DNA of 64,000 nt from Penicillus capitatus (GCA_965649825.1 OZ287705.1:638990-702989); one strand, 5' to 3'; numbered from the stretch's first letter, positions 1 through 50,791 are shown. Numbers and translations: made by a program. The notes: a model not told the origin generated them from the sequence alone.

Positions 1-15
1 TAGCCGTTAACGAAG

Positions 16-466
16 GTCCTCCTCGACTGTGGCGCGAACATCGACGCCAAAGATGATCTAAACGGCGACACGCCGCTTCATTGGGCCGCAATGTTCGGAA
101 TGGCTGAAGCCGTAAAGGTCCGTCAACGCAGTCCTCGCTGTCTCCTGAAGAATGGCCGTCAATGAAGGTCCTCGTCGACCGTGGCGCGAACATCGATGCT
201 AAGAACGTACACGGCATGACTCCTCTTCATTCGGCAGCAGATTACGGTACGGTTGAAGTCGTAAAGGTACGTCGCAGATGTGATCTGATCCTGGATATAG
301 CTGTTCAATGGCATAGGCGCTACTTGATGGTGGCGCGTCCACGTCGGTTAAGGACCTTATTGGTCGCACTCCGTATGATCGTATATGTGATAGTGATCGT
401 TATTGTTATGAGAGTACTCGGTCTGAACTCGAGTCCCTCTTGTCTCCCTCTAACAAGAGCGCATGA
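16..466 (+). CDS. Ankyrin gene A, 3' part only (5' end outside the window): two ankyrin exons plus a terminal cap exon
   Basis: Exon 16-117 VLLDCGANIDAKDDLNGDTPLHWAAMFGMAEAVK; 50-nt GT-AG intron 118-167; exon 168-266 VLVDRGANIDAKNVHGMTPLHSAADYGTVEVVK; intron 267-316; terminal exon 317-466 ALLDGGASTSVKDLIGRTPYDRICDSDRYCYESTRSELESLLSPSNKSA-TGA. Confidence 0.9.
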
Positions 467-528
467 TTCATGGCGTTTTATCATGCATTTTTTGTCTATT
501 CTAAGTCTGTCATCTATGTGCCAGACAG

Positions 529-592
529 ATGGCGCTGTGCATAAAGCTCCATCTCAACTTGCAACTCTGGATGGTGTTTAATGATTGAAGTG
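529..592 (+). promoter_or_regulatory. Conserved 3'-UTR element of the soluble ankyrin genes (candidate 3'-end processing or regulatory signal)
   Basis: GATGG(C/T)GCTGT-x-x-ATAAAGCTCCATCTCAACTTGCAACTC...TGTTTAATGATTGAAG recurs downstream of the stop codons of A (here), B (~1505-1570, minus), C (~6430-6500, minus), D (~10060-10130, minus) and F (~27165-27225, plus). Function is inferred. Confidence 0.45.
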
Positions 593-717
593 CTTTGAGC
601 GAACGGGGCATCGTTACGCGCATCTCGCGTCGGATGCGGCAATTGACATCTGGCTTGCCAGATTACTCTTGTGATTGTGTATGTGGCAATATTCCACTAG
701 CTTTCGCGAATGCAGTG

Positions 718-1111: not shown

Positions 1112-1324
1112 TGTTTTGCCTGATCTCGCAATGAATACACGATCCGAATGTGTTCTGTTGTTATTTGCAGCGACGAAGATCGATCGAACGAGTGGGATAG
1201 ATTGATGAATATTTGCAACAGCACGTATTGACATCAGATTTGCATATCAAAAGCAGACAACGACACGGTCAAACGGTGCAGTAGATGATTACTGATCTCT
1301 GCAGAAAGTCGAGCCCAGATAGAA

Positions 1325-1860
1325 GCATTCTGTAGTGTTCAATGATCACCAGTGGAGAACATTCAAAGGTGAAAGTACTGCACATCTTTCAGGTAGACTT
1401 GCTCACAGCAATCTGTACACAAAGCTGACCTGCATACATCCACCCTGTACTGAGAGATACTGCTGATTGTGCGGGATCGTGTAACTTTGCTTCGCACAAC
1501 AACGCACTTCAATCATTAAACACTAATCGGAGTTGCAAGTTGCGATGGAGCTTTATATACAGCACCATCGAATTGGAGCACTAGAACATGTCTGGCATGT
1601 AGATGCCAGACCAAGAATCAACAAAAAAGAAAGTGCATGACAGAAACGCCATGAATCATGCGCTCTTTGTAGAGGGAGACAACAAGGACTCGAGCTCAGC
1701 CCGTTCACTCGCAGAACAAGTAGTATCCTCTTTCGCACATATGATGTCGTAAGGAGTGCGCCCCTCTTTGTCCATAACCGACTTGGACGCACCAAAACCA
1801 ACCAGTACCTGTGTCATCGAACAATTATACGTTGGATCTGAGAAAATCTGCGATACCTCT
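1325..1860. repeat. Duplicated 3' flank, 3'-UTR, terminal exon and last intron of gene B; matches the gene C end at ~6250-6770
   Basis: TTCAATGATCACCAGTGGAGAACATTCAAAG, CATCCACCCTGTACTGAGAGAT and the terminal exons (GRTPYD(I/L)IC...ELESLLSPSTKSA) are shared in the same order. Confidence 0.85.
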
Positions 1861-3949
1861 GCGATTTCGATCGTACCAAGTGCTGCTGCCCAGTGAAGTG
1901 GAGTTAAACTGTCTGTGGTTTTCGCTTCGAAGTCCGCGCCGCGGTCAAGGAGGACCTTCGGCAGACGACTGTTCTTCGCAGACAACGAGCATTTCGTCGA
2001 CTGGCCTTTGCGGCTTCAACATTTCCGGAAAATACTACTTGATGAAGTGGAGTCGTGCCGTCGTCGTCCTTTGCCTTGACATCCGCGCCACGGTCAAGTA
2101 GGACCTTCGTCGACAGCAATTCGTCAGAAAACATAACTGACTGCATCGTCTGACCTTTACGATTCTAACCTCACCATAATATGCTGCCGAATGAAGTAGA
2201 GTGACGCCGTGTAGGTCTTTGGTCTTGATGTTTGCGCCACGGTCAAGAAGGAACTTCGCCAGACGGCCATTCGTCAGAAAATGCAGTTGACTGCGCCAGG
2301 ATACCTTTACGAGTTTGATTTTCCCGTACGTTACTGCTCGATGAAGTGGAGTCGTGCCATCTGTATCTTTAGCCTCTATATCCGCGCCGCGGTCAAGGAG
2401 GACCTTCGTTCGACGGCCATTCTGCACAGGAGAGCAAAGATTGCGTCGACGGACCTTAACGATTTCGACGTATCCTTCCCTTGCCGCTTTGTGAAGTGGA
2501 GTGTCCCCGTCTGAGGTTTTGGCCTCGATATCCGCGCTACGGTCAACGAGGACCTTCGTTGACAGCCATTCTTCGCGAGACACGATAATTGCGTCGACGG
2601 ACCTTAACGATTTCGACGTATCCTTCCATTACCGCTTGGTGAAGTGGAGTGTCGCTGTCTAAGGTTTTGGCCTCTATATCCGCGCCGCGGTCAAGGAGGA
2701 CCTTCGGTCAAACGGCGATTCGTCAGAAAACATGGACGATTGCGTCGACAGACCTTTACGGCTTCGACTTCTCCGTACGCTGCTGCTTGATGAAGTGGAG
2801 TCCAGCCGGCTGTGGTTTTAGATTCGATATCGGCGCCACGGTCAAGGAGGACCTTCGTTCGACGGCCATTCTTCACAGACAGCGAACATTGCCGTCGACG
2901 AACCTTTACGACTTCGAAGTATCCGTCCATTGCTGCAAAAGAGAGTGGAGTCCGGTCGTATATGGCTTTAGCTTCGATATCGGCGCCACGGTCAAGAAGG
3001 ACCTTCGTTCGACGGCCATTCTGCACAGACAGCGATCATTGCCGTCGACGGACCTTTACGTTTTCGACGTTTCCGAACAATACTGCATCATGAAGTGGAG
3101 TCGCGCCATATGTATCTTTAGCCTCTATATCCGCGCCGCGGTCAAGGAGGACCTTCGTCGACAACCATTCTTCGCGCGACACGATGACTGCGTCGACGGA
3201 CCTTTACGGCTTCGACGCTTGCCATCCTTACTGCTTGATGCAGTGGAGTGCTGCCATCTGTATCTTTAGCCTCTATATCCGCACCACGGTCAAGGAGGAC
3301 CTTCAGTCGACCTCTATTTTTCACAGAGAACGAACATCGCATCGACGAACCTTTTCGACATCGATGCGTCCGATAAATGCTGCTTCATGAAGTGGAGTCA
3401 TGCCGAATTCATCTGTCTTGACCTCGATATCCGCGCCACGGTCAAGGAGGACCTTCAGTCGACCTCTATTTTTCACAGAGAACGAACATTGCGTCGACAA
3501 ACCTTTACGACTTCGACGTGTGCGTACGTTACTGCTATATGAAGCGGAGTCGAGCCGTATGTATCTTTAGCGTCTATATCCGCGCCGTGGTCAAGGAGGA
3601 CCTTCGTCAGACGGTCACTCGTCAGAAAACATGAAAGCCTGCTTCGACGGACCTTTACAGTGTCAACCTTTCCGATCCTTGCTGCTTCGTGCAGCGGAGT
3701 CGATTCGCTATTGTCCGTAGCCTAGATATCCGCGCCTCGGTCAAGTCGTTAAAACAACATGTGTCCTTCCTACCTCGGATCTGAAAAAGACGGAGTCGGC
3801 GAACGCGCCGTCTGCAAAGAAGTCTGCTCAGCAGATGACACTGCCGTCGACACAGATGCATGACCGACGACGGTACCTCGGCTGCACGTCGACTTGCGCG
3901 GAGCGACGAGCAGAAAGCAGAGGCACGTGTGCAGAACGGCGCACTTCAT
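1656..3949 (-). CDS. Ankyrin gene B: predicted secreted protein with signal peptide, 1 partial and 12 full ankyrin exons, and a two-Cys cap exon
   Basis: ATG at 3949 gives MKCAVLHTCLCFLLVAPRKSTCSR; short exon 2 ...DGAFADSVFFRSE; partial repeat ATDNSESTPLHEAARIGKVDTVK; twelve 99/102-nt exons of the VLLDRGADIEAKxxxGxTPLHxAxxxGxVExVK type at ~150-nt period; terminal exon VLVGFGASKSVMDKEGRTPYDIICAKEDTTCSASERAELESLLSPSTKSA-TGA (1656). The frame is continuous when ~50-nt introns are removed. Confidence 0.9.
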
Positions 3950-6564: not shown

Positions 6565-8694
6565 TCATGCGCTCTTTGTAGAGGGAGACAACAGGGACTC
6601 GAGTTCAGATCGAGTACTTTTGGAACATGTCGTATAAGCACCAATACATATGAGGTCGTAAGGAGTGCGCCCCTCTTTGTCCACAACCGACTTTGACGCA
6701 CCAAAGTCAAGCAGCACCTATGCATAGGACAACTATACCTTCGATCTGAGAAAATCTGTGCGTTACCTTTACTCTTCCAATCTCGGCTTGGTATGCTGCT
6801 TGATGCAATGAGGTCTTGCCGTCTTCATCTGCCGCCTCGGTGTTTGCGCCGGCTTCGAGAAGGAGCTACGATCACGGCCATTACTTAGCAGACGGCACAG
6901 GGTTGCGTCGACGGACTTTAATGGTGTCATCCATTCCGAACAGTACTGCACAAAAAAGCGAAGTTTCTCCAGAATAATCCTTCGCCTCGGTGTCCGCGCC
7001 TCTGTCGAGGAGAACCTGCGCCGATGGCCATTCCTTAAGTCACAGCAGAAGGCTGCGCCGACGGACCTTTATGGCTTCGAGGTGTTCAAAGTACACTGCT
7101 GTATGAAGTGGCGTCCTTTGGTTGTTGTCCACCGTTTCGATGTCTGCGCCTCTGTCGAGAAGAACCTGCCTCAACGGCCATTCCTCACGATACTGTAATA
7201 TTTGCATCGACCGACCTTTATGGCTTCGACCTTTCCCGTCGCTGTAGCGTACTGAATTGGAGTACGTTCAAACCACGTCTTCGCCTCGATCTCCGCGCCG
7301 CCGTCGAGGAGGATCTACGCAACGGCCCATTCCTCACGAAACTGCGGTGCTTAGGTCGACGGACCTTGATGGTTTCAACCAGTCCGAGCCTTGCCGCAAA
7401 ATGAAGTGCAGTAGATCCGTAATCGGTCGACGCCTCGGTGTCCGCGCCGCCATCGAGGAGGATCTACGTCAGCCGCCATCCTTGCGGGAAAGCGAAAGGT
7501 GCACAGACGTACCTCTACGACTTTAACGCTTCCTTTCCGTGCCGCGTAGTGTAGCGAAGTCCATCCATTGTCGTCCTTAGCGTCGATCTCCGCGCCTCTG
7601 TCGAGGAGGATCTACGGCCATTCGAATGGGGAAGAGAAAGTCGCGTTGACGTACCTTCACGACTTTAGCGCTTCCTTTCCGCGCTGCAAAATGAAGTGGA
7701 GTCCGTCCACTATTGGTCGATGCCTCGATCTCTGCGCCGCCGTCGAGGAGGATCTACGCTGACGGCTATTCTTGTCAGAAGAGAAAGTTGCATCGGCCTA
7801 CCTCTACGACTTCAAGACTTCCTAACTCTGCCGCGTAATGGAGAGGAGTCCGTCCCCTAGTGTTCGTCGCCTCGATCTCTGCACCTCGGTCGAGGAGGAT
7901 CTGTGACGGCGGCCATTCCTCACGAGACGGTGATATCTGCGTCGACGTACCTTTACGATTTCAAGACTTCCTATCTCTGCTGCATGATGAAGTGGAGTAC
8001 AGCCGTAGACATCTTCCTTGGCATCGACATCTGCGCCTTGATCCAGCAGGTCCTGCGCGTGACACTGCTCGACAAGGAGATTCGAGCGGAGTGAGTCGCA
8101 CCTTTACGCGTTCTACTTCTCCGCTACTAGCTGCCTCATGAAGTGCAGTCCATCCGTCCTCGCCAACAGGCCTATCGTTGACGGTTCCCTGATTGAACGC
8201 ACTCTTAGACTGTATCATCGATCTGTAGCTCTATGTTGGTGACGCGTCGGTCTACCGGATAGGTTTTCTGGGTTCCGTCGCCGTTCTAAGCAAAAAACAC
8301 GGCGCTACTGTTCTGCGGCGTTAAATTGTAGGTCGATTACTTGTTCGAATTTTCGGTCCGAGGCTTCGGCGTAGTAGATTCCTACGAAGCGAGACAGTCG
8401 CTCGGGCGAGGAACAACGCACGTGTGTCGCGTTACCTCCGTGGCGTGCGTCGTCTACGTTCTGTACATGGGGGGCGCAGAACCGTCATTCAGTAAAGGGT
8501 CAAAGCAAAAGGAGCCGTACCGAGAATCTCGACGAGACGGAGTTGGCGGACGCGTCGTCGACAAAGAAGTCTGCGGCGCAGCAAGACATCGCCGTCGACA
8601 CAGATGTATGGACGACGGTACCGCGGTTGCCTGTTGACGGGCGCGGAACAAAGATCAGAAGACTGAGCCACACGCTGAATGTTGTCAGCTTCAT
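6565..8694 (-). CDS. Ankyrin gene C: predicted secreted protein with signal peptide, 4 micro-exons, ~10 ankyrin exons and a two-Cys cap
   Basis: MKLTTFSVWLSLLIFVPRPSTGNR (73 nt); micro-exons of 50, 25, 41 and 30 nt (DFFVDDASANSVSSRFS / NVDDARHG / GIYYAEASDRKFEQ / NGDGTQKTYP); repeats such as DLLDQGADVDAKEDVYGCTPLHHAAEIGSLEIVK and ILLDGGAEIEAKTWFERTPIQYATATGKVEAIK; cap VLLDFGASKSVVDKEGRTPYDLICIGAYTTCSKSTRSELESLLSPSTKSA-TGA. Confidence 0.88.
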
Positions 8695-10216: not shown

Positions 10217-12945
10217 CTAATAAGGATACAAGAGAAACTCGAGCTTAGCTCGAGTACTCGTAGAGCACGAAACAAAACCAACATAGCATATGCGATCGTA
10301 TGGAGTGCGACCACTGTCGTCTTTAGCCAACTTGGATGCACCACCAGCAAGTAGTACCTGTACCATATGACAACTGTACCCAAGATTCGAACGATTCTGT
10401 GGTGTACCTCTACGACTTCAACCACACCGTAATCTGCCGCCCAATGAAGTGGAGTAGCGCCGTACGTGGTTTTGGCTTCGATGTTTGCGCCACGGTCAAG
10501 GAGGACCTTCGACAGACGACAATTCTTCATAGACAGCGAACATTGCGTCGACTAACCTTTATGGCATCGACCTGTTTTTTCGCTACTGCTTCATGAAGCG
10601 GAGTAGGACCATCTACATCCTTGGCGTCGATGTTCGCGCCACTGTCAAGGAGGACCTTTGTTGACCGCCATTCTTCACGAGACGGCGAATATTATGCTGA
10701 CAAACCTTTATGACTTCGACGCATCCTCCCATTGCTGCTTGATGAAGTGGAGTCGTGCTGTATTTATCTTCCTTAGCCTCGATATCCGCGCCGCGGTCAA
10801 GCAGGACCTTCGACAGACGGCCATTTTTCACACACAGCGAACATTGCGTCTACTAACCTTTACGACTCCAACCTCGTCCTGATATGCTGCCGAATGAAGT
10901 GGAGTTGTGCCGCTTGAGCTTTTTGCCTCGATATCTGCGCCTCGGTCAAGAAGAACCTTCGGCAGACAGCCATTCGTCAGAAAAGATTGGTAACTGCGTC
11001 GATGGACCTTTGCGGCTTCCACTTTTCCGTACGCTGCTGCTTGATGAAGTGGAGTCGTGCTGTGTTTATCTTCCTTAGCCTCGATATCCGCTCCGCGGTC
11101 AAGGAGGACCTTCGACAGACGGCCATTCTTCACACACAGCGAACATTGCGTCTACTAACCTTTACGACTCCAACCTCGTCATGATATACTGCAGTATGAA
11201 GTGGAGTAAAGCCGTCTGAGTCTTTGGCCTCGATATCTGCGCCTCGGTCAAGAAGAACCTTCGGCAAACGACCATTCGTCAGAAAACGTGGAAGACTGCG
11301 TCGACAGACCTTTGCGGCTTCGACATTTCCGATCGCCGCTGCTTGATGAAGTGGAGTAGATCCGTCTGAGTCTTTGGCCTCGATGTTTGCACCATGGTCA
11401 AGGAGGACCTTCGTTGACCGCCATTCTTCACGAGACGGCGAAGATTGCATGGACAAACCTTTATGACTTCGACGCATAATCCGATTACTGCTTGATGAAG
11501 TGGAGTAGTCTCGTCTTCGTTTTTGGCTTCGATATTTGCCCCACGGTCGAGGAGGACCTTCGGCAAACGGCCATTCTTCACACACAGTGAACATTGTTGT
11601 CTACTAACCTTTACGACTCCAACCTCGTCATTATATGCTGCAGCATGAAGTGGAGTTCCGCCGCTTGAGCCTTTTGCCTCGATGTTCGCGCCTCGGTCAA
11701 GAAGAACCTTCGGCAGACGACCATTCGTCAGAAAAGATTGGTAACTGCGTCGATGGACCTTTGCGGCTTCGACATTTCCGGTCGCTGCTGCTTGATGGAG
11801 TGGAGTCGAGCCGTATTCATCTTCCTTAGCCTCGATATCCGCGCCGCGGTCAAGGAGAACCTTCGACAGACGGCCATTCTTCACACACAGCGAACATTGC
11901 GTCTACTAACCTTTAAGACTCCAACCTTGTCATAATATATTGCAGTATGAAGTGGAGTAAAGCCGCTTGAGCTTTTTGTCTCGATATCTGCGCCTCGATC
12001 AAGAAGAACCTTCGGCAGACGACCATTCGTCAGAAAAAGTTGATAACTGCGTCGACGGACCTTTACGGCTTCGACATTTCCGTACCCTGCTGCTTGATGG
12101 AGTGGAGTCAAGCCGTATTCATCTTCCTTAGCCTCGATATCCGCGCCGTGGTCAAGCAAGACCTTAATTGACGAGAATTCTGCACGACACAGCGAAGACT
12201 GAGCCGGTGGACCTTTATGGCTTCAACATTTCCGGTCCCTGCTGCTTGATGAAGTGGAGTCCAGCCGCTATTGTCTGCAGTCTCGACGTCTGCGAGTTGG
12301 TAAAGGTGAAACTGTGTCCACAGTTGTGACCATGGCAATCTGATTTGGTTAGCACACACCTTCTCGAGTTCATTACTTCCATCCGCAGCCCTCTTATGAA
12401 GTCGAGCCTGCCTGTCGATTCCGACAGCCTTATTGCCTGTTCTTTGCCCAAGGGCGCCCTATGTCAGTAAAAACGATCCGAGGCGTTGTGTTACAGACGC
12501 TCTATTTTACGTGGTAGGTTTTCTGAATTCCGGTTTCTCCCTGCACAAGAACATCGCGCTGGTTTCTCGACGACGCTAACCGCACCTCAGTCGTTCTTCG
12601 GATCTTTACGGCTGCGGCTTCTCTGTGTTTCGTTCCTGGAATCAAGACAGCAGCGCGCACAAGGAACAACACATGCGAGCTTTGTTACCCCGACGCGCAT
12701 AGTCGCCGCTCTGAGGATGGGCATCGGAGCCGCCATTTAGTCAAGATGTCAGTACAACGCGAGTCCTACCTCGGGTCTGGAGAAGACGGAGTTGGCGAAC
12801 GCGTCGTCTGTAAAGAAGTCTGCTCAGCAGAAGACATCGCCGTCGACACAGATGCATGACCGACGACGGTACCGCGGCTGCCCGTCGACTTGCGCGGTGC
12901 AAAGAGCAGAAGGCAGAGGCACGTGTGCAGAACGGCGCACTTCAT
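10217..12945 (-). CDS. Ankyrin gene D: predicted secreted protein with signal peptide, 4 micro-exons, 1 degenerate and 13 ankyrin exons, and a two-Cys cap
   Basis: MKCAVLHTCLCLLLFAPRKSTGSR; micro-exons; degenerate 99-nt repeat GALGQRTGNKAVGIDRQARLHKRAADGSNELEK; FHLYQLADVETADNSGWTPLHQAAGTGNVEAIK; twelve further repeats of the VLLD(R/H/S)GA type; cap VLLAGGASKLAKDDSGRTPYDRICYVGFVSCSTSTRAKLEFLLYPY-TAG. Confidence 0.88.
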
Positions 12946-18004: not shown

Positions 18005-19097
18005 ATGAAACGCGCTGTTCTTTGCGCTTGGCTCTGTTTCCTTCTTCCACGCTCGACTTTCGGAAGTCATGGTCGTGCCGGTTAAACCATCTCGTCCCTC
18101 AGTCGAGCTTGTCGTTGCGCGAAGGTGCCCAGCTGTCAGCGGAAGGGAACGCTGGAGATAGTCGCTTGCGCAACACAGCCGCCAAGAGAAACGACGACAA
18201 CGCCGAACAGGTGAAACAAACAACCGTAGACCGAGCGCGACGACAAAGGCTGCCGACGCAGTTGCAGATCGGGCACAACCCCGACTACCACAACGCTTCG
18301 ATCGTCGCAACGAAACCGCTTCATGTGGCAGCCGCACTGGGAAGAGCAGACCGCGTGAAGGTGCGTTAAGTAACATACGGGAGAAGGTTCACTGGCGAAT
18401 CTCTTCTGTGCAGCGTCTTCTCGATCGCGGTGCGGACATCGACGAGACAGAAGAGAACGGTTTCACAGCACTCCACTGCGCAGTGTCGATTCCCTCAGAA
18501 GGAAGCGCGGCGACTGTCGAAGCGAGAGCGCAGACCGTGAAAGTAAACGCCGATATGTGATCGCCCTGTCGCTTGTGATTGCGATTGCAGGTTCTGCTCG
18601 ACGAAGGAGCGAACATCGAAGCGAAAGACGAGCAGGGCATCACTCCATTGCACCTTGCAGCCGCCACAGGATGCGTGGAGGTTATTCAGGTGAGGCGCTC
18701 AGTCTGCTTTACAGCCGAGTGACGCGAGATGCCTTGGCAGATTCTGCTCGATCACGGCGCGTCCAAAAATGTGAAGGACACGTCGGGGAGCATCCCATAC
18801 GACCTTGTGTATCTCTTTGTGGACGAGGAGGATTCTGGAAACGAGAGGTCTGTGGTCGAGTCCATGTTGAATCCACAAGGGGATCGCAGCAACGACGATG
18901 GCAAGCACCGCCCGTGGTGGCGCATGGCACTGATCATCGGTTCTATTGGTTTCGTTGTTCTGATCGCCGTTCTTCTGACAGTCACGGCGTGCTGCGTTAT
19001 TCATGGACCATCGATGAGCATTGACACAACCAACGGTCCATCGCTGAGCTTTGACACGACCAACCACCCGTTTTATCCAACACGGTCCAAGATCTGA
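18005..19097 (+). CDS. Ankyrin gene E: predicted type I membrane protein (signal peptide, 3 ankyrin exons, cap, TM helix, short tail)
   Basis: MKRAVLCAWLCFLLPRSTFGSH; repeats ...ATKPLHVAAALGRADRVK, RLLDRGADIDETEENGFTALHCAV..., VLLDEGANIEAKDEQGITPLHLAAATGCVEVIQ; terminal exon ILLDHGASKNVKDTSGSIPYD...WWRMALIIGSIGFVVLIAVLLTVTACCVIHGPSMSIDTTNGPSLSFDTTNHPFYPTRSKI-TGA. Confidence 0.85.
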
Positions 19098-21555: not shown

Positions 21556-21559
21556 CGCG

Positions 21560-29072: not shown

Positions 29073-30485
29073 ATGAAACGCACTGTGCTGTACGTGTGGT
29101 TCTGCCTAGCGGTCGTCCTCCGTACGAGCGCCGGCAGTCGTGGTACCACTGACGAAAGCATTTTTTCGAGCTGAAGTGTGTTATCGCGCACAGAGGCACA
29201 GCTGTCGGACAAGGAACACGCCGGAGACGCATCTCGACGCTCGGCAGCCGGCAAACGAAATGGCACAAGCGAGCAAGTGAGACCGCATAACCCTACCTCG
29301 TGGAGACGATTAACGGAGGCGACTCCAGCAGCTGTTGTTCGGTGGCGACGCGGACCGCGTTAATATGAAAGACCTCACCAAAGCGACGCCGCTTCATCTA
29401 GCGGTACTGACGGGATACGTGAAGAACGTAAAGGTGTGTGTTTGTTCGAGTGGCGGTTTGTTGAGGAGGACGGACCGGCTGGCTGTGTAGGATGCGCTTA
29501 ACGATGGGGCAGACGTCGAGGCAAAAGACAAAAACCAACAGACTCCGCTGCACTACGCCGCGCTCATTGGTCATGCAGATATCATGAAGGCGATTCGCGA
29601 CGCCGCTCAAAGTCTCTCAACCAATCGCCGTTTTGCAGGTTCTACTCGACCGCGGTGCGGATATCGAAGCGAAGGACACGAGAGGATGGACGGCGCTTCA
29701 CTTAGCCGCAACCTCTGGACCAATGGAGATCTTAAAAGTGCGCGCGTTCGCATCCCCACGGCGCTACGTGAGGCGTCGCTGCCTTGACAGCTCCTTCTCG
29801 AGAGAGGAGCAAAAACAGAGGCGACAGATCGAGAAGGACTGACGCCACTCCGCTATGCGGTGTTGTTCAACAACATGGACTTTATGAAAGTGCGCCGCCA
29901 GCTCGGCAAGATACGGCGAACGATGGGCTTCTTAACAGGCACTGATCGACAGCGGTGCGAATACCGAGGCGGTGGATATCTCGGGATGGACGCTGCTCAT
30001 TCACGCGGCACTGTTTGAGGATCCAGGACTCGTGAAGGTGCGTCCCTCTGTGCGACAGAGTCAGACGAGATGCGCTGTCTCGTAGACGCTACTCGACAAC
30101 GGTGCACAGACTGAGGCGGCGGACATCAATGGACGCACCGCTCTGTTCTACGCAGCTCGATTCGCAAGAGTGGAGATTGTCGAGGTGAGATAATCGATCT
30201 GATCAGGCCTGTGCGAGAACGGTGCCGCGACAGATTCTGTTGGATGCTGGCGCGTCCATAATGGCGGAGGACGAGATCGGGATGACGCCGTGTGAGGTCG
30301 TCTGCGCCGCTGCGAATGCGTACTGTCCAGCGAACATCAAACGTATGCTCACGTCTAAGCTGTCTATTGTCACGGGCGGCGGGCGCCGATGGCTGAGTAT
30401 TCTGAAAACCTGCGCCATTGTGCTGTTTGTTGTGCCACTCGTCATTGGCTGTTGTTGCTGCTGCTGTCGTCTCATAGGAGGTTGA
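29073..30485 (+). CDS. Ankyrin gene G: predicted type I membrane protein (signal peptide, 6 ankyrin exons, two-Cys cap, TM helix, hexa-Cys tail)
   Basis: MKRTVLYVWFCLAVVLRTSAGSR; repeats e.g. VLLDRGADIEAKDTRGWTALHLAATSGPMEILK and LLLERGAKTEATDREGLTPLRYAVLFNNMDFMK; terminal exon ILLDAGASIMAEDEIGMTPCEVVCAAANAYCPANIKRMLTSKLSIVTGGGRRWLSILKTCAIVLFVVPLVIGCCCCCCRLIGG-TGA. Confidence 0.87.
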
Positions 30486-31548: not shown

Positions 31549-34500
31549 ATGCCGTCCTCAGCACGGAGTCGCTCACCGAGTCTCGCCGCGAGACAGCGCT
31601 GGGCGCTGCTGTGCTTCGCGGCTGTGTTGTTCGCGCTGCCGCAGATTCGCGGAAGAGGTAGGACCGCATGCTCCTTCTTTTGCCATCATGACAGCCACAG
31701 TCGCTTGCTTACAGATGTGAGCCCGTCGAGGGCACTGTTTCAAATCCACGGTCGGAAAGAGGTTACCGTCGTTTCGGTAGGCGAGCTCCAGTCTGTCTTG
31801 GCGGACCACGAGTATAACCATCGTATCTCCGTCGACGCACGGGAGATTGCACTGACGGCGAATCTTCGCGTCAACGGCAGTGGATGGGTCTCTCTCGAGG
31901 GAAATAGAAAGGGGGCGACAACCATAAGGTGCACGAAGAACAGCACCGGCACCGCTTTGGTCATCAGGTGCGATCAGCCCTTCCATCGCGTATCCACTGA
32001 CAGGAGTGATGTGACCTGATAGGCGAGCACATGTGCAGTTCGCGCGCTTGCGCTTTGTCGGTTGCGACAACTCGGCCGTCGTCGTGGAACCTGACTACTC
32101 AGAGTCTGGAGAAGAGGGACAGACGGTGGACTTCGACCAAGTCGAGTTCGCCAACAACGGACAGGCGAAGGACAGAACGTCTGGAGCGGCAGTGAACGCT
32201 CGTCGCTGCCCCGAGCAGCCCTGTCGTCGCCTCTCTCTTCGATTCCGAAAGTGCCAGTTCGTCGGCAACCGAGGATCGGACGGCGGGGCGATCTTTGCCG
32301 AAGACGCAGACATCGACATCAGGCAGTCCACGTTCGAAGACAACGAGGCAACCGGCGCTGGCGGCGCCATCTACATAGACAATGGCAGAACTGCGGCGCT
32401 GACAATCGAGGACTCGGAGTTCGCGAAGAACAAGGCCTGGGGATCCGAAGAGCTCGAGGCTGCGGCGTGCAGGTCTGTCCTCACATCCAACGTAATCGAA
32501 CTGGCCAGAGGAACGGGTGGCGCCATCTTCGCATACAGTCCTGCCTCCGTTGACATCCGAACCTCGACTTTCGTGCAGAACACCGGATGCAACGGCGGCG
32601 GGGCGATTGCGGTGCTGCAGATAGACGTCGGCTCGGAAGAGAACTCTCGTCCAGCCTCCTTCTCTGTGACGGACGCCATCTTTCAGGAGAACGCAGCCTA
32701 CTGCGGATCGCAGCGAGATGCCATTGATTTTGTGTACTACAGTCGCGACTGCTCCAAGGGCGGCGCTCTGGTCTACGAAGCCCTGGACGAGTCGCCAGCC
32801 TCGTGGACGTTCAGAAATTCCTCCTTCCTCGGAAACAAAGCCATCGTCGGAGGAGCCATGCACCTTCGAGGTCTCGGCAGTTCCGTCGCAGAGCACAAGG
32901 TCATCTCTTGCGATTTCGACGAGAACATGGCGATCCGGTCTGGTGGAGCCATGTACCTGAAGGAAGTCAGAATGGCGATTGCGAGCTCGAATTTTTCGCA
33001 CAGCAGGGCCTTCTACGGTGGTCACATACTGAGTATCGGACCAACACACCTGAGAACGGAGCGCGACCCCGACAGGCCTGAAGCGCGTACCGTTCTCTCA
33101 GACGCGATCGCTTACTTCGGCGGCGCCGTGCTGACAACCAGCGAAGGTTCTCTGTTTGATCTGGCAGTTGCCTCTGCCACTGCATCGTGTCTGTTCGCAG
33201 GTTCGTTCGATCTCGCTGCGCTGGTCGTCCGAAACAACGTGGCTTACGGGGCCGGCGGCGGGTTTTGCGTAAGAGATTCTTCGCTGACTCTCGTGTTTCG
33301 CGATGTGCTGATCGAGAATAACTCCGCCATTCTCGGAGGGGGAATCGAGATAGTCTCGTCGCCCAACATCACGTTTGAACCGAGCGTCGGAACGTCGACG
33401 ATCATAAGGAACAACACAGCTGCAGTGGGGGGCGGAATGCGGTACCTGACAGGACGCTTCTCTTTTTCCCTGTTAAAAGCAAGCCGAGTCTGGTTCCAGA
33501 CGCAAGACACTGAGACCTTCGTGCTTGCAGATGAAACGCGTCAGTGTGATTGGCAACAGGGCGATACGGATGGAGTCTCCAGAGATGCAGAGGATCATCG
33601 AAGACAGAAGACAATACGCTCCCTCTCTGACAGAAGGCGTGCGATTCCCGGACATCGATGCAGTGCTCGGCCATCTGAGTACACTCAGATTCTACACGGA
33701 GACAGGAGAAGGCAACGGAGGCGGCTTCAATCTGGAGTTCGAAGACGTCGCGCCCAACGACATCGTGGAGGTCGTCTTCCAGGACGTGCTGTTTGAAGAC
33801 AACGAGGCCGTTGTCGGAGGTGAGCTCCGACGAATCTCGAACTCGCCTTACTCGACGGTGCAGGTGGCGTGTCGGCTCACATGAAAGACTTCTACTGGAA
33901 CAGGTCGAACAGAACATCGTGCTTTCCAGCCCTGTTTGGCATCTCTGCCTGTCAGAGGTTCTCGTTCCACAACGTCACCGTGGTGCGAAACAGAGCGGAG
34001 TATGCTGGCGGCGTCTTCTGCAGCATATCGAACTGCATCGCCTTCTCCTGCAGCCCGGAGAGCCAGACAAAGCTCGTCACTTCAGAGCCAGATGTCGCTG
34101 TCACGTCGACGGAAGTGATACGGTCGTACTGCTCAGAGATTTACTGGAATGAAGCTCTCGGCAGAGTCAACGGTGATGGGGCCAACGGAGGCAGCAAGGC
34201 GGTGTATCTGTCAGTCGTCGGACACGAAGGTCCGCTGAAGACTGTCGCGAGCGGAGAGAAGCTGGCCATTCCGTGCGAGGACGGGCGAAACGCTTCCTGT
34301 GCTGCGGAGCTTCGCATCGCCGTCAAAGACATCTTCGATCAGACGATCACCCGTGGCATTGACGACGCCAATCTGACCCTGGCACTCATCTCCAAAGCCA
34401 TCACTGGAGGACTGAGATACACGGCTGAAAGAGGAGTCGCTGTGATCGACAGCACCTTCGCCTGGGGAATCGGCGTCGAGGACACGCTGACGATAGTCAG

Positions 34501-36888
34501 CGAGCAGGACCCGAAGATCCGTCTGGAAATCCCGTTCTCGACGAGGAAATGCTTTCCCGGGGAGACGACTGTGGGCAAGGAGTGCAGCAGGTGTCCTCGA
34601 GAGTTCTACGGATTCGACCCATCGCTGCCGTGTCTGCCGTGCGAGAGCGGCGCCGAGTGCGGCGGCGGCGCAGCGATGGTCCCCATGGAGGGTTACTGGC
34701 ACTCCAATCCGTTCTCCCCCGTCTTCAGAGAGTGCATCAAGTCGACTGCCTGCGCGTACACAGACAGGAGGCAGAAGCTGGAGGCGTTCCACGAGGACGC
34801 CGACAGAGTCCAGGAAGCACTGCGAAATCTGGACAGAGACGTCGACGAAGCCGGATGGAGGACGGACTCCATAGACTATCCGGTGTGCAACGAAGGTTAC
34901 CGAGGATTCCTGTGTGGATCCTGCGACTCAGGATACGGCCACTCATACACGGGAGATTGCGAGAAGTGTCCGAGCAGAGATTCCTCGGTTTGTCTGTTCT
35001 TTCTGAGCTCCGTCTGGCTCTTCGTCATCATCGGAATCAACAGCGCCATCACAGTGACCTCCATGCGCTCCACCGTCGAGCGCGTGAAGTACGAGAGGAG
35101 CGCAACACTCAGAGACAGACGCCGTCTCTTTCAGCGAACAAACCATGTCCGAAGAGCAGAGGCAGTGTTGCCCCGACGAACATCTCTGTCAAGAGGTGGT
35201 TCCCGACAGCATTGCATCTGAGATCTTAACAGTGTGTTTTTGTATCTGACAGCAAATCTGGATCCAGTCGATGACGCTGCCGTCGGCGATACAATTCTCC
35301 TCGCCAAGAACCTCGCGGCGACTGGTCAGCTGAGTGAAATGCTCAAGGTTCGCGGCATTCATGTGCTCATCTCTTGTTGCTTTGATTCTTGCCATCCAGA
35401 TCCTCATCAACTACCTGCAGATCACCAGCGTGGCGCTCAGAGTGCATGTGGAATGGCAGTCGTCCTTGAAGCTGTTTCTCGAAGCCGAAGGTTCGTCGTT
35501 TCTGGCAGGGAATGATGCTGATCGTGTTTGTCTGTGCAGCTGTTTTGTCCGGCCTCTCCACCTCAGCGACATCAGACGACGTCGAATGCAGTTTCCAGGA
35601 GAGCGTTATTCAGGCGTCCATCGCCGCCACATGGACTCAGCTGTCCATTCCGTGGATCGTGCTGACTGCGCTGCTACTGACCTGCACAGTCGCCTGCCTC
35701 GTACTGAAGATCAAGTCCGGATTGGCCAGCTCGGCCCAGTCGTCCACGCAGGTCAGCTTCGTCCGCTTTGTCACCTACGTCGTGGCTATCTCCATCGTCT
35801 CGATACACTTCTTCTTCCTCGACGCCGTGAGAGAGCTGTTGGGGACCGTCAACTGCATCAGAGTCGACGATCTGGATCTGGAGGGCCATCCCTACGCGCA
35901 GTACTCCACAGAGACCGTCAACAGACTGGTGTGGACAATGGATACCGAGGTCACCTGTTTCCAGGGAGCACATCTGCCGCTCGGCGTCGTCGGATTCGCG
36001 GGACTCGCCCTCGCCTTCCTCTTCGTTTTGCTGATCGTTGTCTGGGTGCCTCTGAACCGAAGACATGCAGAAGACCCAGAGTTCATCGCCCGTTACTGGT
36101 TCGTGTACCAGGGCTACGGAGAGGAGTGGTACAGGAGGTCATGGGAATCGGTCATCCTCACCCGAAAGGCACTGATTGCTGCCGTGGTGTCCTTCTCTGT
36201 GCACCTCAGCCTCGGGCTGCAGGCGAACATGTGCACAGGGATCCTGACCATCGCCGCCATCCTCCAAGCCCTCTTCCTCCCGTTCAAGACTCCGGAGACC
36301 CGACAGAACGTCCCAGACTACGCAGATGGGCTGCTGCGCTCAATGTATCTGCCGAAACTGGGAAAGGCATGGGTCGCCTTTAACAACGCCGTCAATCTGA
36401 ACCTTCTGGAGATCATGTCCCTGGCATCCTCCATCTCTGTATTCTATTCCGCCAACGTCTCAGTCGATCTCACTTCAGGCGAGTCTGGCAGCACCGCGAT
36501 GTTTTCATTCGCCTTTGCCTTGAACATTCTTTTCTTGCTTTATGTTCTGTACCGCATGTATGCGGGCGTCCACGTGCTGTTCGATCTGAAGCTCGAGCTC
36601 AACAATCCGGGTTTCTTGAGCGTGTATGAGAACGGGATGGGTCTCTTTTCTTTCTTCGTCAAGGTCCGCGTCCTCGTTTCTGAGTATATGCGTAGCGACG
36701 ATGCACTCACGTCGGCCAAAATCGACTCGAGTGCTTCGATCGTTGACGGATCTTCCTCGGCAGAGACGAATGACGCGGAGTTCACTCTGCTTGCCAGAAT
36801 CAAGAAATGGTCCGGCATCTGTTGTCGCCAATCTCCTGTCTCCACAGATCGTTCGTCTAACACTCCATCGGTCCACACCATTGTGTAG
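31549..36888 (+). CDS. Giant membrane protein P1: signal peptide, right-handed beta-helix (Pmp-like GGAI/FxxN) ectodomain, Cys-rich domain, and ~8-9 TM C-terminal module
   Basis: N-terminus RWALLCFAAVLFALPQIRG; repeated DGGAIF, AGGAIY, GGGAIA, SGGAMY with FxxN spacing; CSRCPREFYGFDPSLPCLPCESGAECGGGAAMVPMEGYWHSNPFSP..EC; TM1 SSVCLFFLSSVWLFVIIGI; QLSEMLK|ILINYLQITS; ARYWFVYQGY..YRRSWESVILTRK. Multi-exon with ~50-nt introns; exact junctions not all resolved. Confidence 0.85.
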
Positions 36889-46323: not shown

Positions 46324-49037
46324 CTGCCAACAGCCATGCGCATGGGTGGAGACTGTCGAGGCGACGAACCGTGGACCGTCGGAGAGACATTAGACACGAC
46401 GGCTGTCAGTCGAAGAAACGTCAGTCGTGCTGCGTTTGCGTGGCTTTTCGAGTTCTTCCGGAGACAGAGCAGAGGGGGAGACAAACAAGAGAGTTATAGT
46501 CAGGAAAGGCGACGGCCTTTAATAGGGGCATTGAACAAAACGTCATGCATGACGCGAGAATGGCGTGACGTACTCGGCGGGATAGTCAGAGAGTAGATGT
46601 AAACGCGAAGATGCAGCGCATTGATGACGCGACGGTCACATCGGTCACCGTCCGACGAATCGCACGTCGGAGTCCGTTATCGAGGAACCCTTTCAGGCGA
46701 TGTCGTTCACAACCTAGATGTGCAAAGCAAAAGGACAATCCCACTGACAAACGAATCACCGACGAAGCATCTTCTCTGAACAGTTACTGCACCCCATCGC
46801 TGCCCGCCAAGAAAGCAACGCCAAAGAAGATCAAGATTATCACCACGAGATACAAAGAAACGAAATCGCCAGTCGACAAAGGGAGTGCTGGAAAGATATG
46901 ATGCAACAGAAAAGCATGTGATTGCCTATTCTTTCGACGGCATCATGGACGATCTGTTCTGAACAGGCAGGGCGCTGAAGAGAGCGGTCGAGAAGTGGCA
47001 GCAGAGACACGTGGTAATGTCCAGTTGTCTGATGGCCGGTTCCCTTGAGGGAGCCCATCCAGTGGTCGATACTCCACCGCACAAAACTGTGATCGGAGCA
47101 TGTGCTGCGTCGTCTTCGTCTCCTCGAGAGTGCCTACTAGAAGAAGAGACCCTCTCAGATTTTCCAGCACCTCTATCTGGGAAACGCCCTGTCAGCTCAG
47201 AGCGTTGTCGGAACATGAGAGGCATCTGTATGGCTCGTCATCTGTTCTTTGCGTCGAAGATCCGAGGCCCTCTGTTGAACGCTGCCCTCTAGATGGACAG
47301 AGACAGGAGTTTCAAAGAAGAGCTTAGTTCACATGCAGTCTAAGCACAGATCTGTGTCGGGGAGATGAATCTGTACTGTACACGCATGCTGTGGATAGGC
47401 CATCGGTGAAGTGATTCGCTCCTCACTGACGAACAAACCAGAGATCACACCAGGGTGATGCTTCATCAAGACAACAAACCTGTCAACCATGTGCAAATGA
47501 TTCGACTGGAATGCGGGGAAGCAATTGGATCAGGCAAGAGTACGCCGTAAACTCGTGCAGATAAACAGACAGAAGATGTGTGACATTATCGATGGTGTTG
47601 TGTAACAGAGAGACGTCGTTACTAGCTGAGTTTCTCTATTCTGTCTGACGACTTGTCTTTTCGCATGATCCAATATCCTCACACTCTTTGTGCCATACAT
47701 CACTCTTTTTGCCTTTTCTCCCTCAGTGCATCTGTGTACTCTCTTTCTCTTTTTCTGAGCTCTTGGTGACGCATCAGGTGTGGAGCAACGCAGTCTCTGA
47801 TTCCGTCTGCCCGTCCACTTAAGTGCCTCCGATGACGTTAGAACGCTTCTGCAAAGACGACAGTTGTCCATCCGAGTCTGCAGATCTGTGATCACTGTAC
47901 CTGCCCTCTAGGGAGTTCCAGAATCTCCGTTTTCTTTACCACTGCTCCATCCTGCAAACTGTGATCCTTTCTCTTCGCCCTTTCTGGAATACATCTTCGA
48001 GACGGCGGCGGCTATCTGTGTGTGACCTGTCGATGTGGTTGTGGGATTGCATCCCTACATCCACGTCCGCGTCTGTCGCCGCCTCTTCGATTTCTAGTGT
48101 CGGAGTCTCGTTCTTATCGACTAAGACGGCAGCAATGTCGCGTCATTTGGCAGATGCGTTCTGCAGATGAAGAACCTCCTCCACTGTACTATCGCGTATC
48201 CACATCCTCCCATTTCTTCAAACAATGTCCGCCACCCAGTGTTCATTCCCCTTCGTAAACACTGGGTGGTGCACTCTTCTCTATATGGCGCTAACGATAA
48301 GACACCAGAGATATCATTCCTACCGCCATGCACAGGACCTTCGATAAACGCAGCAAACAAATGTCAGCCGAGGAATCGTGAAATCGCTATGCAAACCAAT
48401 ACATCATCTAGCTTGGAAGAGCACAATGACCACGGTGTTGGTGTCGGAGGGTGTGTGCCTGCCATTCAGCAGCTTAGAATGGATGAGTGCTTTCTTGAAT
48501 GCTGATCTCATCGTGTGGTCGATCATTCATCACAGACTCATTAGGACATGAGTCTGTTTCTAGTGTCTGTGAAGACACCCATTCCTGCATACAACGACTA
48601 GCACCTCTAACTGCAGTGATTGACTGTTGGGGAGCTGTGCTGCGCTGTCAGCAACCGTTTGGTAGATAGAGACCGTTCTTAGATCGACGGTAACAAACCA
48701 TCCGCGGCGCTCGCGCAAAGCGGCTGCAGACGGATAGAGGAACGGCTGGACGCGACTCACACGTCCTGCAAGCCGCAGACTAACCGTTACAGCACAACTG
48801 CGCTCTGACGAATGGAGTCTCTCCATCCTCGTTTCAGAGCACTTGGCACGCGTACCGACTCGGAAGAGAGATAACCGAATGCAGACGGCAGCCGCGTGGC
48901 GAATGGCAGCACGAAACCGCCGGAGGAATAAAGTCCGCCCGCCACGGCGATTCTTCATTCGCGAATTCTCTGTTCGAGAAACACACGAACTGTCTGTCCA
49001 TCTGAGCTAAGCCGAACTCTGCGCTGACGAAGAAAGC

Positions 49038-50791
49038 ATGAAGCTGTCCATTCTCAGCGTGTGGCTCTGCCTTCTGTTCCTTGCTCCGCGCCCGTCGACG
49101 GGCAACCGCGGTAGCGTCGTCTGTGCATCTTTGTCGGCAGCAATGTCTTGCTGCTCTGCAGACTTCTCTCCTGACGACGCATCCGGCAACTCCGTCCGTT
49201 TAAACTCTCGGCAACGCTCATTGCTTTGACCTTTTACTGAATGGCGGTTCTGTGCCACGTGAACAGAACATAGACAACACGCGCGATGGAGGTAAAGAGA
49301 CACGCGTTTGTTGTTCCGTGCGAGAGCGACTGTATCGCTTCGTAGGAATCGACAACGCCGGAACCTCCGACCGAAAGCTTGCGCAAGTAAACGCACTGCA
49401 GTTACCACGGCGGATAGTCAGCGTGGTGTTTTTGTGTAGGACGGCGTACCATCTAAGGAAGACATGATGGTAGGATGACGCGACAATAATACAACACTGC
49501 ATATCGTTGTTACTCTCTAAGGGCACTGCGCCTTCTGAGACGGATTTTGAATTCGCGTATCAATTTGAAATTGATGCGTATGACGAGCATGAGAGATACA
49601 TGGATGACGACGCCGACCGGGTTGTCGATGTTGAGGGATGGACCAAACTTCATGAGGCAGCCAAGCACGGAGACACAGAATACGTAAAGGTATGAGAGTC
49701 TGTTCGACTTCCTGCTTCGGACAGTTTCCAACGTAGAACAAGGTTGTTAAAGACGACGTAAAAATCGAATACAAGGAAGAGAATGGACAACGTACTGCAC
49801 TTCATATTGCAGTAGCGCACAGACAGACTGAAATCGTAAAGGTGTGCCGTCGACGCAAGCTTTTCTGTTTTGTGACGAATGGTCGTCGAATAGACGCTCC
49901 TTGAAAAGGGTGCAAAAGTCGATGCGGAGGACTACGACGAACGGACTCCACTTCATTTTGCAGCAGTGAAGGGATACTTGGAAATCGCAGATGTCTGTCG
50001 ACACAGCATTCTCTGTTTTGTGACGAATGGTCATTGAGTAGATGTTCCGCGAAAAGGGTGCAAACATCAAGGCGATAGACTCAGCCGAACGGACTCCGCT
50101 TCATTATGCCGCAGTAAAGGGACGCGCTGAAGTCGCAAATGTCTGTCGACGCATTATTCACTTGTTTTATGACGAATGGTTCGTCGAATAGATGCTCCTT
50201 GAAAACGGAGCAATCGTGGATGCGGTGGAAGGTGATGAACGGACTCCACTTCATCAGGCAGTAAGGTTCGGATATGTTAATGCTGTAAAGGTCCGTCGAC
50301 GCAAACTTTTCTTTTTTGTGACGAATGGTTGTCGAATAGATCCTCCTTATACACGAAGCAAACGTCACCGCTCTTGACGAACACGACTGTACTCCACTCG
50401 ATTATGCAGTAGAGTGGAACAGGTATAGAATCGTAAAGGTCTGTCGACGCAGCATTCTCTGTTTTCTGACGAATGGTTCGTCGAATAGATACTCCTTGAA
50501 AAAGGCGCGAAAGTCGATGTGACGACAGAAAAGGGATGGACTCCACTTCATGTTGCAGCGAGGAATGATTATTATAAAATCGCAAAGGTACCTGCCATGC
50601 CGGACTTGCTCGGATCATGGGTATTCTTTCTTATGGCACAGGCACTAGTTGGAAAAAAAGCATCCAAAGTGGCTAAGGACAACAAAGGTCATACTCCTCA
50701 TGACGTCGTATGTGCCGATGCAGACTTTTGTTTTAAACGATCTGCGCTCGAGAGTCTGTTGAAACCAACAGTCAAGAAAGAAAGCGAATGA
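49038..50791 (+). CDS. Ankyrin gene H: predicted secreted protein with signal peptide, micro-exons, an acidic insert, 7 ankyrin exons and a two-Cys cap
   Basis: MKLSILSVWLCLLFLAPRPSTGNR; DFSPDDASGNSVRLNS; GIDNAGTSDRKLAQ; GTAPSETDFEFAYQFEIDAYDEHERYMDDDADRVVDVEGWTKLHEAAKHGDTEYVK; repeats e.g. TLLEKGAKVDAEDYDERTPLHFAAVKGYLEIAD; cap ALVGKKASKVAKDNKGHTPHDVVCADADFCFKRSALESLLKPTVKKESE-TGA. Confidence 0.88.

Follow-up and report, generated by a model that had tools for sequence, protein, structure and literature searches.

When searched with a profile derived from its own repeats, the window, a stretch of 64,000 nucleotides of the Penicillus capitatus assembly (GCA_965649825.1 OZ287705.1:638990-702989), shows 70 ankyrin-like segments, which fall into eight clusters. 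Rebuilding these clusters yielded eight gene models (A-H), all of them open reading frames and seven of them complete, in agreement with the eight paralogs carrying about 60 ankyrin exons proposed in a sequence-only reading of this DNA. The models exhibit two architectures. The soluble type comprises gene A (16..466, + strand), of which only the 3' part, two repeat exons followed by the C-terminal cap exon, is inside the window and whose start lies upstream, where a near-identical ENA contig (L005) has a further seven full repeats plus a partial repeat; gene B (1656..3949, - strand; 16 exons, 511 aa), composed of the signal exon, a 50-nt exon, a truncated first repeat, 12 full repeats and the C-cap exon; gene C (6565..8694, - strand; 16 exons including five small 5' exons, 455 aa); gene D (10217..12945, - strand; 20 exons, 587 aa, 14 repeats), which is a recent duplicate of B that includes the upstream flank; gene F (25101..27068, + strand; 15 exons, 417 aa); and the divergent gene H (49038..50791, + strand; 13 exons, 370 aa), whose model is open only if exon 2 uses an alternative donor. 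The membrane type comprises gene E (18005..19097, + strand; 6 exons, 278 aa), with the signal exon, 3-4 repeats and a C-terminal transmembrane helix, and gene G (29073..30485, + strand; 9 exons, 333 aa), with the signal exon, 6 repeats, a transmembrane helix and a CCCCCC tail. Ankyrin is the only Pfam domain in the cluster genes: the Ank family matches gene D in 13 stretches with 363.6 bits against a cut-off of 21.1, and genes E, G and H likewise exceed the curated ankyrin cut-offs (PF00023/PF12796 clan). Structure prediction, which had been suggested as a check, agrees with this assignment, as the AlphaFold2 single-sequence model of G is an ankyrin solenoid with paired helices in each repeat (block-mean pLDDT ~69-95 over residues 71-260).

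Analysis of the exon structure reveals a highly regular cassette. Sixty-one ankyrin exons are 99 or 102 nt long and every one of them is phase 0-0, while three more deviate from this size (69, 129 and 168 nt). The number of repeats per gene ranges from about 3-4 in E to 14 in D, as had been claimed. The phase rule does not extend to the 5' exons, which measure 73, 50 (32 in the H model), 22/25, 41/50 and 30 nt in C, D, F and H (five each), only 73 and 50 nt in B, 67 and 86 nt in E, and 70 and 83 nt in G. Introns between neighboring high-scoring repeat exons (n=42) are 43-57 nt long with a mode of 50/51, and the range over all gene models is 43-73 nt; the splice sites are GT-AG with the exception of three GC donors. 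That these introns are real follows from the fact that successive repeats occupy different reading frames. The 50-nt introns have a family-specific consensus, GTyyGTCGACGCArT..TC....TtTsTGAmGAATGGyCGTCGaCgAAG (e.g. the intron at 10507..10556, - strand), and the repeat units have clearly been duplicated together with their introns. The earlier observation that the framework is often constant down to third codon positions is borne out by the codons of the TPLH motif: ACT, CCA, CTT and CAT account for 87, 79, 73 and 80% of usage in the family, vs 14, 26, 10 and 37% in neighboring genes.

All seven complete genes begin, as had been noted, with a hydrophobic exon resembling a signal peptide, e.g. 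in gene D the 73-nt exon at 12873..12945 (- strand), which ends in phase 1 (MKCAVLHTCLCLLLFAPRKSTGSR). The equivalent exons lie at 3877-3949 (-), 8622-8694 (-), 18005-18071 (+), 25101-25173 (+), 29073-29142 (+) and 49038-49110 (+). Each encodes MK(C/L/R) followed by approximately 11-13 hydrophobic residues (Kyte-Doolittle 11-residue maxima of 2.5-2.85) and a stretch of small residues, which reads PR(K/P)STGSR in five genes, PRSTFGSH in E and RTSAGSR in G. At the other end, a conserved last exon encodes half a repeat and a cap, xLLDxGASKSVKDxxGRTPYDxIC(x5-6)C..ELESLL (e.g. 6565..6717, - strand, in gene C; equivalents at 317-466, 1656-1808, 10217-10357, 26931-27068 and 50642-50791). The CX5-6C cysteine pair of this cap is common to A, B, C, D, F and H, and is found also in the related contig L003 and in P0359. 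In E (18741-19097) and G (30234-30485) the last exon is lengthened by a transmembrane helix (19-residue Kyte-Doolittle hydropathy of 2.92 and 2.82, respectively), which is present also in the related-species gene P0358, and in G and its L003 orthologs the helix is followed by a poly-Cys tail. Such a tail fits a cytosolic C-terminus, which would place the ankyrin domain of G on the luminal or external side. Several repeats contain single unpaired cysteines, and N-glycosylation sequons are neither significantly depleted nor enriched (5 observed vs 9.3 expected, P = 0.08). The usual folding compartment of ankyrin domains is the cytosol, and extracellular cases are rare. Nonetheless, judging from the signal-like exon, the helix of E and G and the cysteine pair of the cap, secretory or extracellular routing of the family is plausible, so that the extracellular part of the earlier proposal is kept here as a plausible prediction short of proof.

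Genomic neighborhood analysis revealed that the ankyrin genes are interleaved with members of another family, represented by PMP1 (31549..36888, + strand), which joins a signal-like N-terminus to a Chlam_PMP/beta-helix region and also contains a Cys-rich stretch and a multi-pass membrane domain; its paralogs are located at 38729..~44300 (-), at ~53200..58907 (+) and, as a fourth copy, upstream of A. A nearby open reading frame with a PaO domain (29.1 bits vs a cut-off of 27) is the only plastid-type hint. The TGTAA motif shows neither enrichment nor a consistent position after stop codons, and the search for Rfam and tRNA markers found none. Outside the window, gene G has two orthologs in L003 with identical exon sizes, including the GC donor, which also retain the signal-like exon; the last exon of E has an ortholog in P0243; and the cap recurs in family members at several loci of three related metagenome contigs. 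NACHT genes of the related species are located in the vicinity of family members. The databases searched contain no annotated relative: the best identities, about 42%, are to generic ankyrin matches, and among the best 150 matches from a library of 1.84 billion proteins we identified no C-cap outside this lineage.

The repeats combine a near-invariant framework with a limited set of variable positions. Among 53 internal repeats, the amino acid entropy reaches 3.2-3.7 bits at exon codons 13, 14, 15, 17, 22, 25, 26 and 28. The sequence-only reading had equated the variable sites with the residues randomized in DARPin libraries, and five of the six DARPin positions (exon codons 14, 15, 17, 25 and 26) are indeed hypervariable; the sixth, position 33 (exon codon 12), is always Lys in B and D and most often Lys (64%) over all repeats, and variation is seen also at codons 13, 22 and 28, outside the DARPin set (positions 2, 3, 5, 13, 14 and 33). 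The family thus resembles DARPins in its consensus-like framework and in variation at hairpin and helix-1 positions, and differs from these synthetic libraries in the remaining sites. Recent duplicate repeats have "variable" residues in common, so that not every repeat is unique, in contrast to the near-universal difference suggested before. Binding-face sites vary in ankyrin repeats generally, which is the basis of DARPin design; the positional pattern is therefore generic and alone is no evidence for an immune function.

In order to estimate selection on these sites, we compared repeats with each other and with their counterparts in a related species. In 16 independent nearest-neighbor repeat pairs, omega relative to synonymous sites at the a priori DARPin codons is 1.63 (bootstrap 1.22-2.29), rising to 2.78 (1.89-4.25) in the six closest pairs, whereas framework omega is 0.43-0.53. 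These values are inflated, because synonymous sites and introns of the family are visibly constrained or homogenized; measured against the centers of the introns, their least conserved part, omega of the face is ~1.1-1.5, which is compatible with a mere lack of constraint. Face-codon identity is 0.39-0.42 even within one gene, i.e. near random. A different picture is provided by gene G, which between species shows dS of 0.42 and omega of 0.31-0.33, with face dN (0.06) below that of the framework (0.09), clearly indicating purifying selection. In the syntenic F-like gene of L003 the binding face is fully replaced (face pN 0.78 and saturated, pS 0.43-0.49, framework pN 0.12), in a comparison of two repeats whose one-to-one orthology is assumed from synteny only. 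The excess of non-synonymous change at binding-face codons that the earlier proposal had anticipated thus appears in the soluble repeats when measured against synonymous sites and is reversed in G, and rapid diversification would apply at most to the soluble subfamily (A-D, F and H).

Several known systems share parts of this pattern. Fungal NLRs with hypervariable ANK, TPR or WD repeats possess highly similar tandem repeats in which a small number of surface positions are hypervariable and under positive selection, and their repeat number is unstable; these repeats are not known to be split by introns and belong to cytosolic proteins, where a NACHT or NB-ARC domain precedes them, while the ankyrin genes in the window have no NACHT domain. 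Shuffling of exons that each encode one repeat is already known from the ROCO-LRR and NB-ARC-TPR genes of the brown alga Ectocarpus (PMC3341825; PMC11378527). These share with the window family the fixed-length phase-0 exon, the tandem clusters, and the gain and loss of repeats by exon duplication or shuffling, and their ligand-binding face has elevated omega, to be set beside the 1.6-2.8 (vs synonymous sites) or 1.1-1.5 (vs intron centers) found here. The Ectocarpus proteins are intracellular LRR or TPR proteins with a signaling domain (ROC-COR or NB-ARC), long introns and inactivated exons; the window family instead has ankyrin repeats, a signal-like peptide, no signaling domain and uniform 50-nt introns. 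Among Bryopsidales green algae, Ostreobium P0113 combines a signal-like N-terminus, an ankyrin array, a Cys-containing cap and a tandem paralog, although its gene differs from the window family in that introns are long and an exon encodes several repeats, and Bryopsis P0067 has an ankyrin array and a Cys-containing cap in a model without a signal-like start; neither cap is significantly similar to that of the window. Secreted ankyrin families, too, are already known: they have been described as effector candidates in the oomycete Phytophthora sojae (PMC11139960), and ankyrin proteins are enriched in the secretomes of plasmodiophorids, whose genes have introns of ~60 bp (PMC4471660).

Taken together, these features suggest, with a probability that we put at roughly 55%, a lineage-specific tandem ankyrin family that enters the secretory pathway in two architectures, with arrays built by cassette duplication, soluble faces that change and membrane faces that are conserved. 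In the soluble proteins (A-D, F and H) a signal peptide that would be cleaved off precedes a brief acidic N-terminal segment specified by the small 5' exons, of which B has two and C, D, F and H have five each; 7-14 repeats and the Cys-pair cap complete the protein. E and G would be type-I membrane proteins in which the signal peptide and 3-6 repeats are followed by a transmembrane helix, to which G adds a cytosolic Cys-rich tail. The arrays probably grew as a 150-bp unit, which joins one 99/102-nt phase 0-0 exon to one ~50-nt intron, was duplicated in tandem, and with such a unit unequal exchange can add or remove repeats with the frame intact. Residues of the concave face in the soluble type would be free or driven to change, providing a germline repertoire of putative binders for variable partners; the conserved face of the membrane type implies fixed partners.

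The export on which this reading depends could be doubted, as ankyrin repeats are overwhelmingly intracellular and a plastid-type gene lies nearby: the first exon might be a signal anchor or direct the protein to an organelle or the endomembrane system (e.g. as part of a bipartite plastid signal), with the repeats remaining inside the cell. We regard this as very unlikely, since the hydrophobic core of ~11-13 residues is short for an anchor and is followed by small residues at -3/-1 (e.g. STG|S), the region downstream is acidic (DFFxDDAxANSV), unlike transit peptides, and the transmembrane helix of G with its C-terminal poly-Cys fits a type-I topology. The secreted ankyrin families already described (PMC11139960, PMC4471660) make an effector role of the soluble members, acting on proteins of a host in or on which the producer lives, a serious competitor of the receptor interpretation. 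The points of likeness are a signal-like peptide with ankyrin repeats as the sole domain, as in the P. sojae class and the plasmodiophorid proteins, a clustered and copy-rich family with a fast-evolving face, short introns, as in plasmodiophorids, and matching contigs that come from metagenome samples. The described producers are known pathogens; the PaO-domain gene hints at a plastid-bearing and possibly free-living alga; we found no sequence relationship to the described effector families, the best matches being generic ankyrins at ~42% identity; no RxLR-like motif was seen after the signal exon when the gene models were inspected by eye; and the family has its own Cys-pair cap and conserved, membrane-anchored members (E and G), which misfit a translocated effector. 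We therefore consider an effector role unlikely.

We would give no more credit to an ordinary ankyrin family without a diversification function, in which duplication and conversion keep framework and introns alike while the face drifts neutrally. The variable sites are those that vary in ankyrin repeats generally, omega against intron centers is merely ~1.1-1.5, face-codon identity within genes is near random, and G is under plain purifying selection, all of which such drift would accommodate. Against it, omega relative to all synonymous sites is significantly above 1 and highest in the youngest duplicates, the seven complete genes and ~60 exons are intact, which favors selection on function, and conversion tracts alone cannot skip single interspersed codons. 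Returning to the two-architecture secretory family, the earlier interpretation as a diversifying extracellular recognition system is thus partly supported. Its strongest form, in which the soluble genes encode in the germline a set of ankyrin binders that act outside the cell, like a natural DARPin library for variable microbial, symbiont or self/mating ligands, appears quite unlikely at present. If true, it would mean that exon-intron cassettes, by being duplicated and lost, are the source of new specificities, to which variety at the RNA level may add, because skipping of any phase 0-0 exon preserves the frame, and that the membrane-anchored paralogs and the interleaved PMP-like surface proteins would serve as fixed partners or anchors.

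The window has a G+C content of about 52% and is eukaryotic DNA. Scanning it with a profile made from the repeats it contains detected 70 ankyrin-like segments in eight clusters. Successive repeats, spaced by about 150 nt, are each bounded by AG and GT and lie in different reading frames, so the spacers between them are introns. Two dynamic-programming splicing models were dropped because length maximisation kept introns and a splice-matrix score over-spliced, and the gene models were instead curated by paralogue alignment: A (16..466, +; its 5' part lies beyond the window start), B (1656..3949, -), C (6565..8694, -), D (10217..12945, -), E (18005..19097, +), F (25101..27068, +), G (29073..30485, +) and H (49038..50791, +). 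Every model has an uninterrupted reading frame between ATG and stop codon, and together the models contain 61 exons of 99 or 102 nt in phase 0-0; the coordinates and counts of the sequence-only reading (eight paralogues, about 60 ankyrin exons) are therefore correct. The 42 introns between adjacent high-scoring repeat exons measure 43-57 nt (most often 50/51), and the roughly 90 introns of all models range from 43 to 73 nt. Pfam domains in the models belong to ankyrin families only, and an AlphaFold model of G, run without an alignment, is a confident ankyrin solenoid with low-confidence ends, which bears out the fold assumed earlier. Outside all eight models, an ORF at 17097-17546 (-), which lies shortly before the start of E but on the other strand, carries the ankyrin-like pieces NVDVTDANGDTPLHT and LFLNSGADSTIENKDGLTPQCLAAK and may be a further ankyrin gene or a remnant.

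Analysis of the exons flanking the repeats reveals two architectures. In the soluble type (A-D, F, H) the first exon, of 73 nt, encodes MK, roughly 11-13 hydrophobic residues and PR(K/P)STGSR. It is followed in C, D, F and H by four small exons (50, 22/25, 41/50 and 30 nt; the second exon of the H model has 32 nt), of which B retains only the 50-nt one; the small 5' exons of this type encode an acidic stretch. Then come 7-14 repeats and a last exon of the form xLLDxGASKSVKDxxGRTPYDxIC(x5-6)C..ELESLL. In the membrane type (E, G) the signal exon resembles that of the soluble type, the second exon is of another kind ("AQLS..."), and there are 3-6 repeats, with the last exon prolonged to encode a helix of strong hydrophobicity (KD19 2.8-2.9), after which G has CCCCCC. 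We infer that the family enters the secretory pathway, with its repeats outside the cytosol, since the shortness of the hydrophobic core, the small -3/-1 residues, the acidic stretch behind them and the poly-Cys run C-terminal of the helix in G fit such entry. The extracellular location proposed earlier is plausible, and the routing itself is predicted from these features. Depletion of N-glycosylation sequons, considered as a sign of ER transit, was not significant (P = 0.08).

The variation within the repeats is concentrated at defined positions. Over 53 internal repeats the framework is nearly fixed, and entropy reaches 3.2-3.7 bits at exon codons 13, 14, 15, 17, 22, 25, 26 and 28. Five of these eight codons are DARPin library positions, so the proposed match to the residues randomised in such libraries holds for them; however, DARPin position 33 (codon 12) is an invariant Lys in B and D. 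The TPLH motif is written ACT-CCA-CTT-CAT in 73-87% of repeats, and this synonymous conservation is not codon bias, because neighbouring genes use these codons at only 10-37% within the codon families.

The rate of change at the binding face was estimated from recent duplicates, as 16 non-overlapping nearest-neighbour repeat pairs. At DARPin codons chosen a priori, dN amounts to 0.44 and the pooled dS to 0.27, giving an omega of 1.63 (bootstrap 1.22-2.29; 16 pairs), which rises to 2.78 (1.89-4.25) in the six closest pairs, as against 0.43-0.53 for the framework. The synonymous sites and introns of the family are visibly constrained or homogenised, and relative to the least conserved intron part (d = 0.35 and 0.29) the face ratio is about 1.1-1.5. 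The face can safely be said to change no more slowly than neutral sites, and it may change faster.

Comparison with related loci divides the family further. An exact look-up of two window ORFs in the protein collection matched neither, but the window sequence recurs almost unchanged in an ENA metagenome contig, ERZ25074695 ctg340182_20x_l: over the 21 kb compared there are 120 differences, all at 39000-45000 (the region of PMP2, one of the large neighbouring PMP genes described below) and none in the other approximately 15 kb, which may reflect differing haplotypes, conversion among PMP paralogues or the assembly itself. A related species is represented in a second sample by ERZ26696514 ctg303386_66.28x_l, which is syntenic with the window at about 77% DNA identity. 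In that species G has two inverted orthologues with identical exon sizes. Between species the dS of G is 0.42 and its omega 0.31-0.33, and its face dN (0.06) is below that of the framework (0.09); the binding face of G is therefore under purifying selection. An orthologous last exon of E is also present in the related contigs. The F-like gene adjoining G in the related species has a framework pN of only 0.12 and keeps the Cys pair, and change at its face codons has reached saturation (pN 0.78 versus pS 0.43-0.49). No repeat-by-repeat correspondence was found for other family members in the related contigs L007 and L008. With the face of G conserved, that of the F-like gene saturated and those of recent duplicates changing fast, the family consists of conserved membrane-anchored members and soluble members with quickly changing faces. 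"Rapidly diversifying", as the sequence-only reading had it, thus describes at most the soluble members and not G, and the excess of non-synonymous change expected at the face appears among duplicates when measured against synonymous sites and is reversed in G. The contig L008 (ERZ25074695 ctg338876_6x_c, 1-12777; 6x coverage) comes from the sample that also contains the window-like contig; its family members have only 65-75% DNA identity to the window genes, and it represents either a second related organism in the sample or a distant paralogous locus.

Several introns depart from the common pattern. Three have a GC instead of a GT donor after a repeat exon, at 2005 (-), 25983 (+) and 29590 (+); the one in G is probably a working GC-AG intron, because it is kept in both related-species orthologues. 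In B, the intron preceding exon 3 contains the 5' half of an ankyrin exon (3722-3773, -; …LDRGADI*), whose in-frame TAG supplies a new AG acceptor, which leaves B with a truncated first repeat exon of 69 nt. Compared with C, D and F, exon 2 of H and its intron (49162-49266, +) show a 1-nt deletion and a GC at the ancestral donor; in the gene model the frame is preserved only via an upstream GTCCGT donor, which makes the exon 32 nt and the intron 73 nt long. The introns of about 50 nt in A-D, F and H form a sequence family of their own (e.g. 10507-10556, -, and 50439-50488, +). Their identity between H and B/D is 70-72%, versus 54% for a shuffled baseline and 47-51% for framework third codon positions, and their consensus is shared neither by G introns nor by those of unrelated genes. 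A conserved RNA stem formed by the palindromic CGTCGACG, which stands at each end of the intron, was rejected (RNAalifold -0.66 kcal/mol, helix unsupported). Short introns also occur elsewhere in the genome.

Four large paralogous PMP genes are interleaved with the ankyrin genes, at 31549-36888 (+), 38729-~44300 (-) and ~53200-58907 (+) in the window and at 1399-6255 (-) in the near-identical ENA contig L005. Each combines a signal-like N-terminus and Chlam_PMP/beta-helix repeats with a Cys-rich region (DUF7630-like) and a TRP-like, multi-pass membrane domain. G and its PMP neighbour also lie together in the related species, in two copies arranged as a palindrome (inverted repeat). NACHT-domain genes of the related species (L006 1971-2450, -; L007 2821-3804, -) lie a few kb at most from the PMP gene and from ankyrin members, and one of them adjoins a long HEAT-repeat ORF. 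Within the window, gene duplication also took in intergenic blocks (700-1100 and 5340-5740) and the sequence upstream of B and D (3998-4828 and 13050-13861); a conserved element, GGTGCTGTrCATAAAGCTCC, recurs in the 3' untranslated regions of A-D and F. TGTAA, a candidate for a chlorophyte poly(A) signal, shows no enrichment. Neither the Rfam and tRNA scans, which covered the window and the loci, nor Pfam scans of intergenic ORFs gave a hit. An ORF with a PaO (pheophorbide a oxygenase) domain at 63274-63579 (-; Pfam 29.1 bits versus a cut-off of 27) is syntenic in the related species, with genes for GYF, LSM and Mak16 beside it; the ORFs around it showed no Rieske domain, and the PaO ORF hints weakly at a plastid-bearing organism.

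Ankyrin repeats are regarded as an intracellular scaffold; to our knowledge few secreted eukaryotic ankyrin families have been described so far, and those are pathogen effectors. Such families form an effector class in oomycetes (PMC11139960) and are enriched in plasmodiophorid secretomes (PMC4471660); the window family is like them in architecture, but is not a member by sequence. The same holds, with respect to gene structure, for the brown-algal ROCO-LRR and NB-ARC-TPR genes, which have one repeat per phase-0 exon and an elevated omega at the binding face (PMC3341825). A profile of the C-terminal exon was compared exhaustively with 1.84 billion proteins, and among the best 150 matches listed the only cap-bearing ones identified (the cap being the C-terminal part of the last exon) were ORFs of the same lineage. 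A search with a spliced protein returned generic ankyrin matches only, at identities of at most 43%, and a chimeric query of unspliced ORFs was dominated by long generic ankyrin proteins. The similarity of the Ostreobium/Bryopsis ankyrin cap to that of the family is not significant, and the Ostreobium ankyrin gene is unlike the window family in gene structure.

The most likely reading, to which we give a little better than even odds (about 0.55), is a family of secretory-pathway ankyrin binders made of exon-intron cassettes, with one branch that is soluble and evolves fast and a membrane branch that is conserved. Its role may be recognition at the organism's own surface or action on a host. 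If ankyrin arrays do pass through the secretory pathway here, the natural use of the ankyrin fold would be wider, whichever role applies: self-defence, symbiosis, adhesion or host manipulation. Because each repeat is its own frame-neutral exon and the face of one subfamily turns over quickly, this would also be the second case, after the LRR/TPR genes of brown algae, in which a repertoire of binders evolves by exon cassettes, in an unusual cluster of surface-protein genes from an unannotated eukaryotic lineage that is present in public metagenome assemblies.
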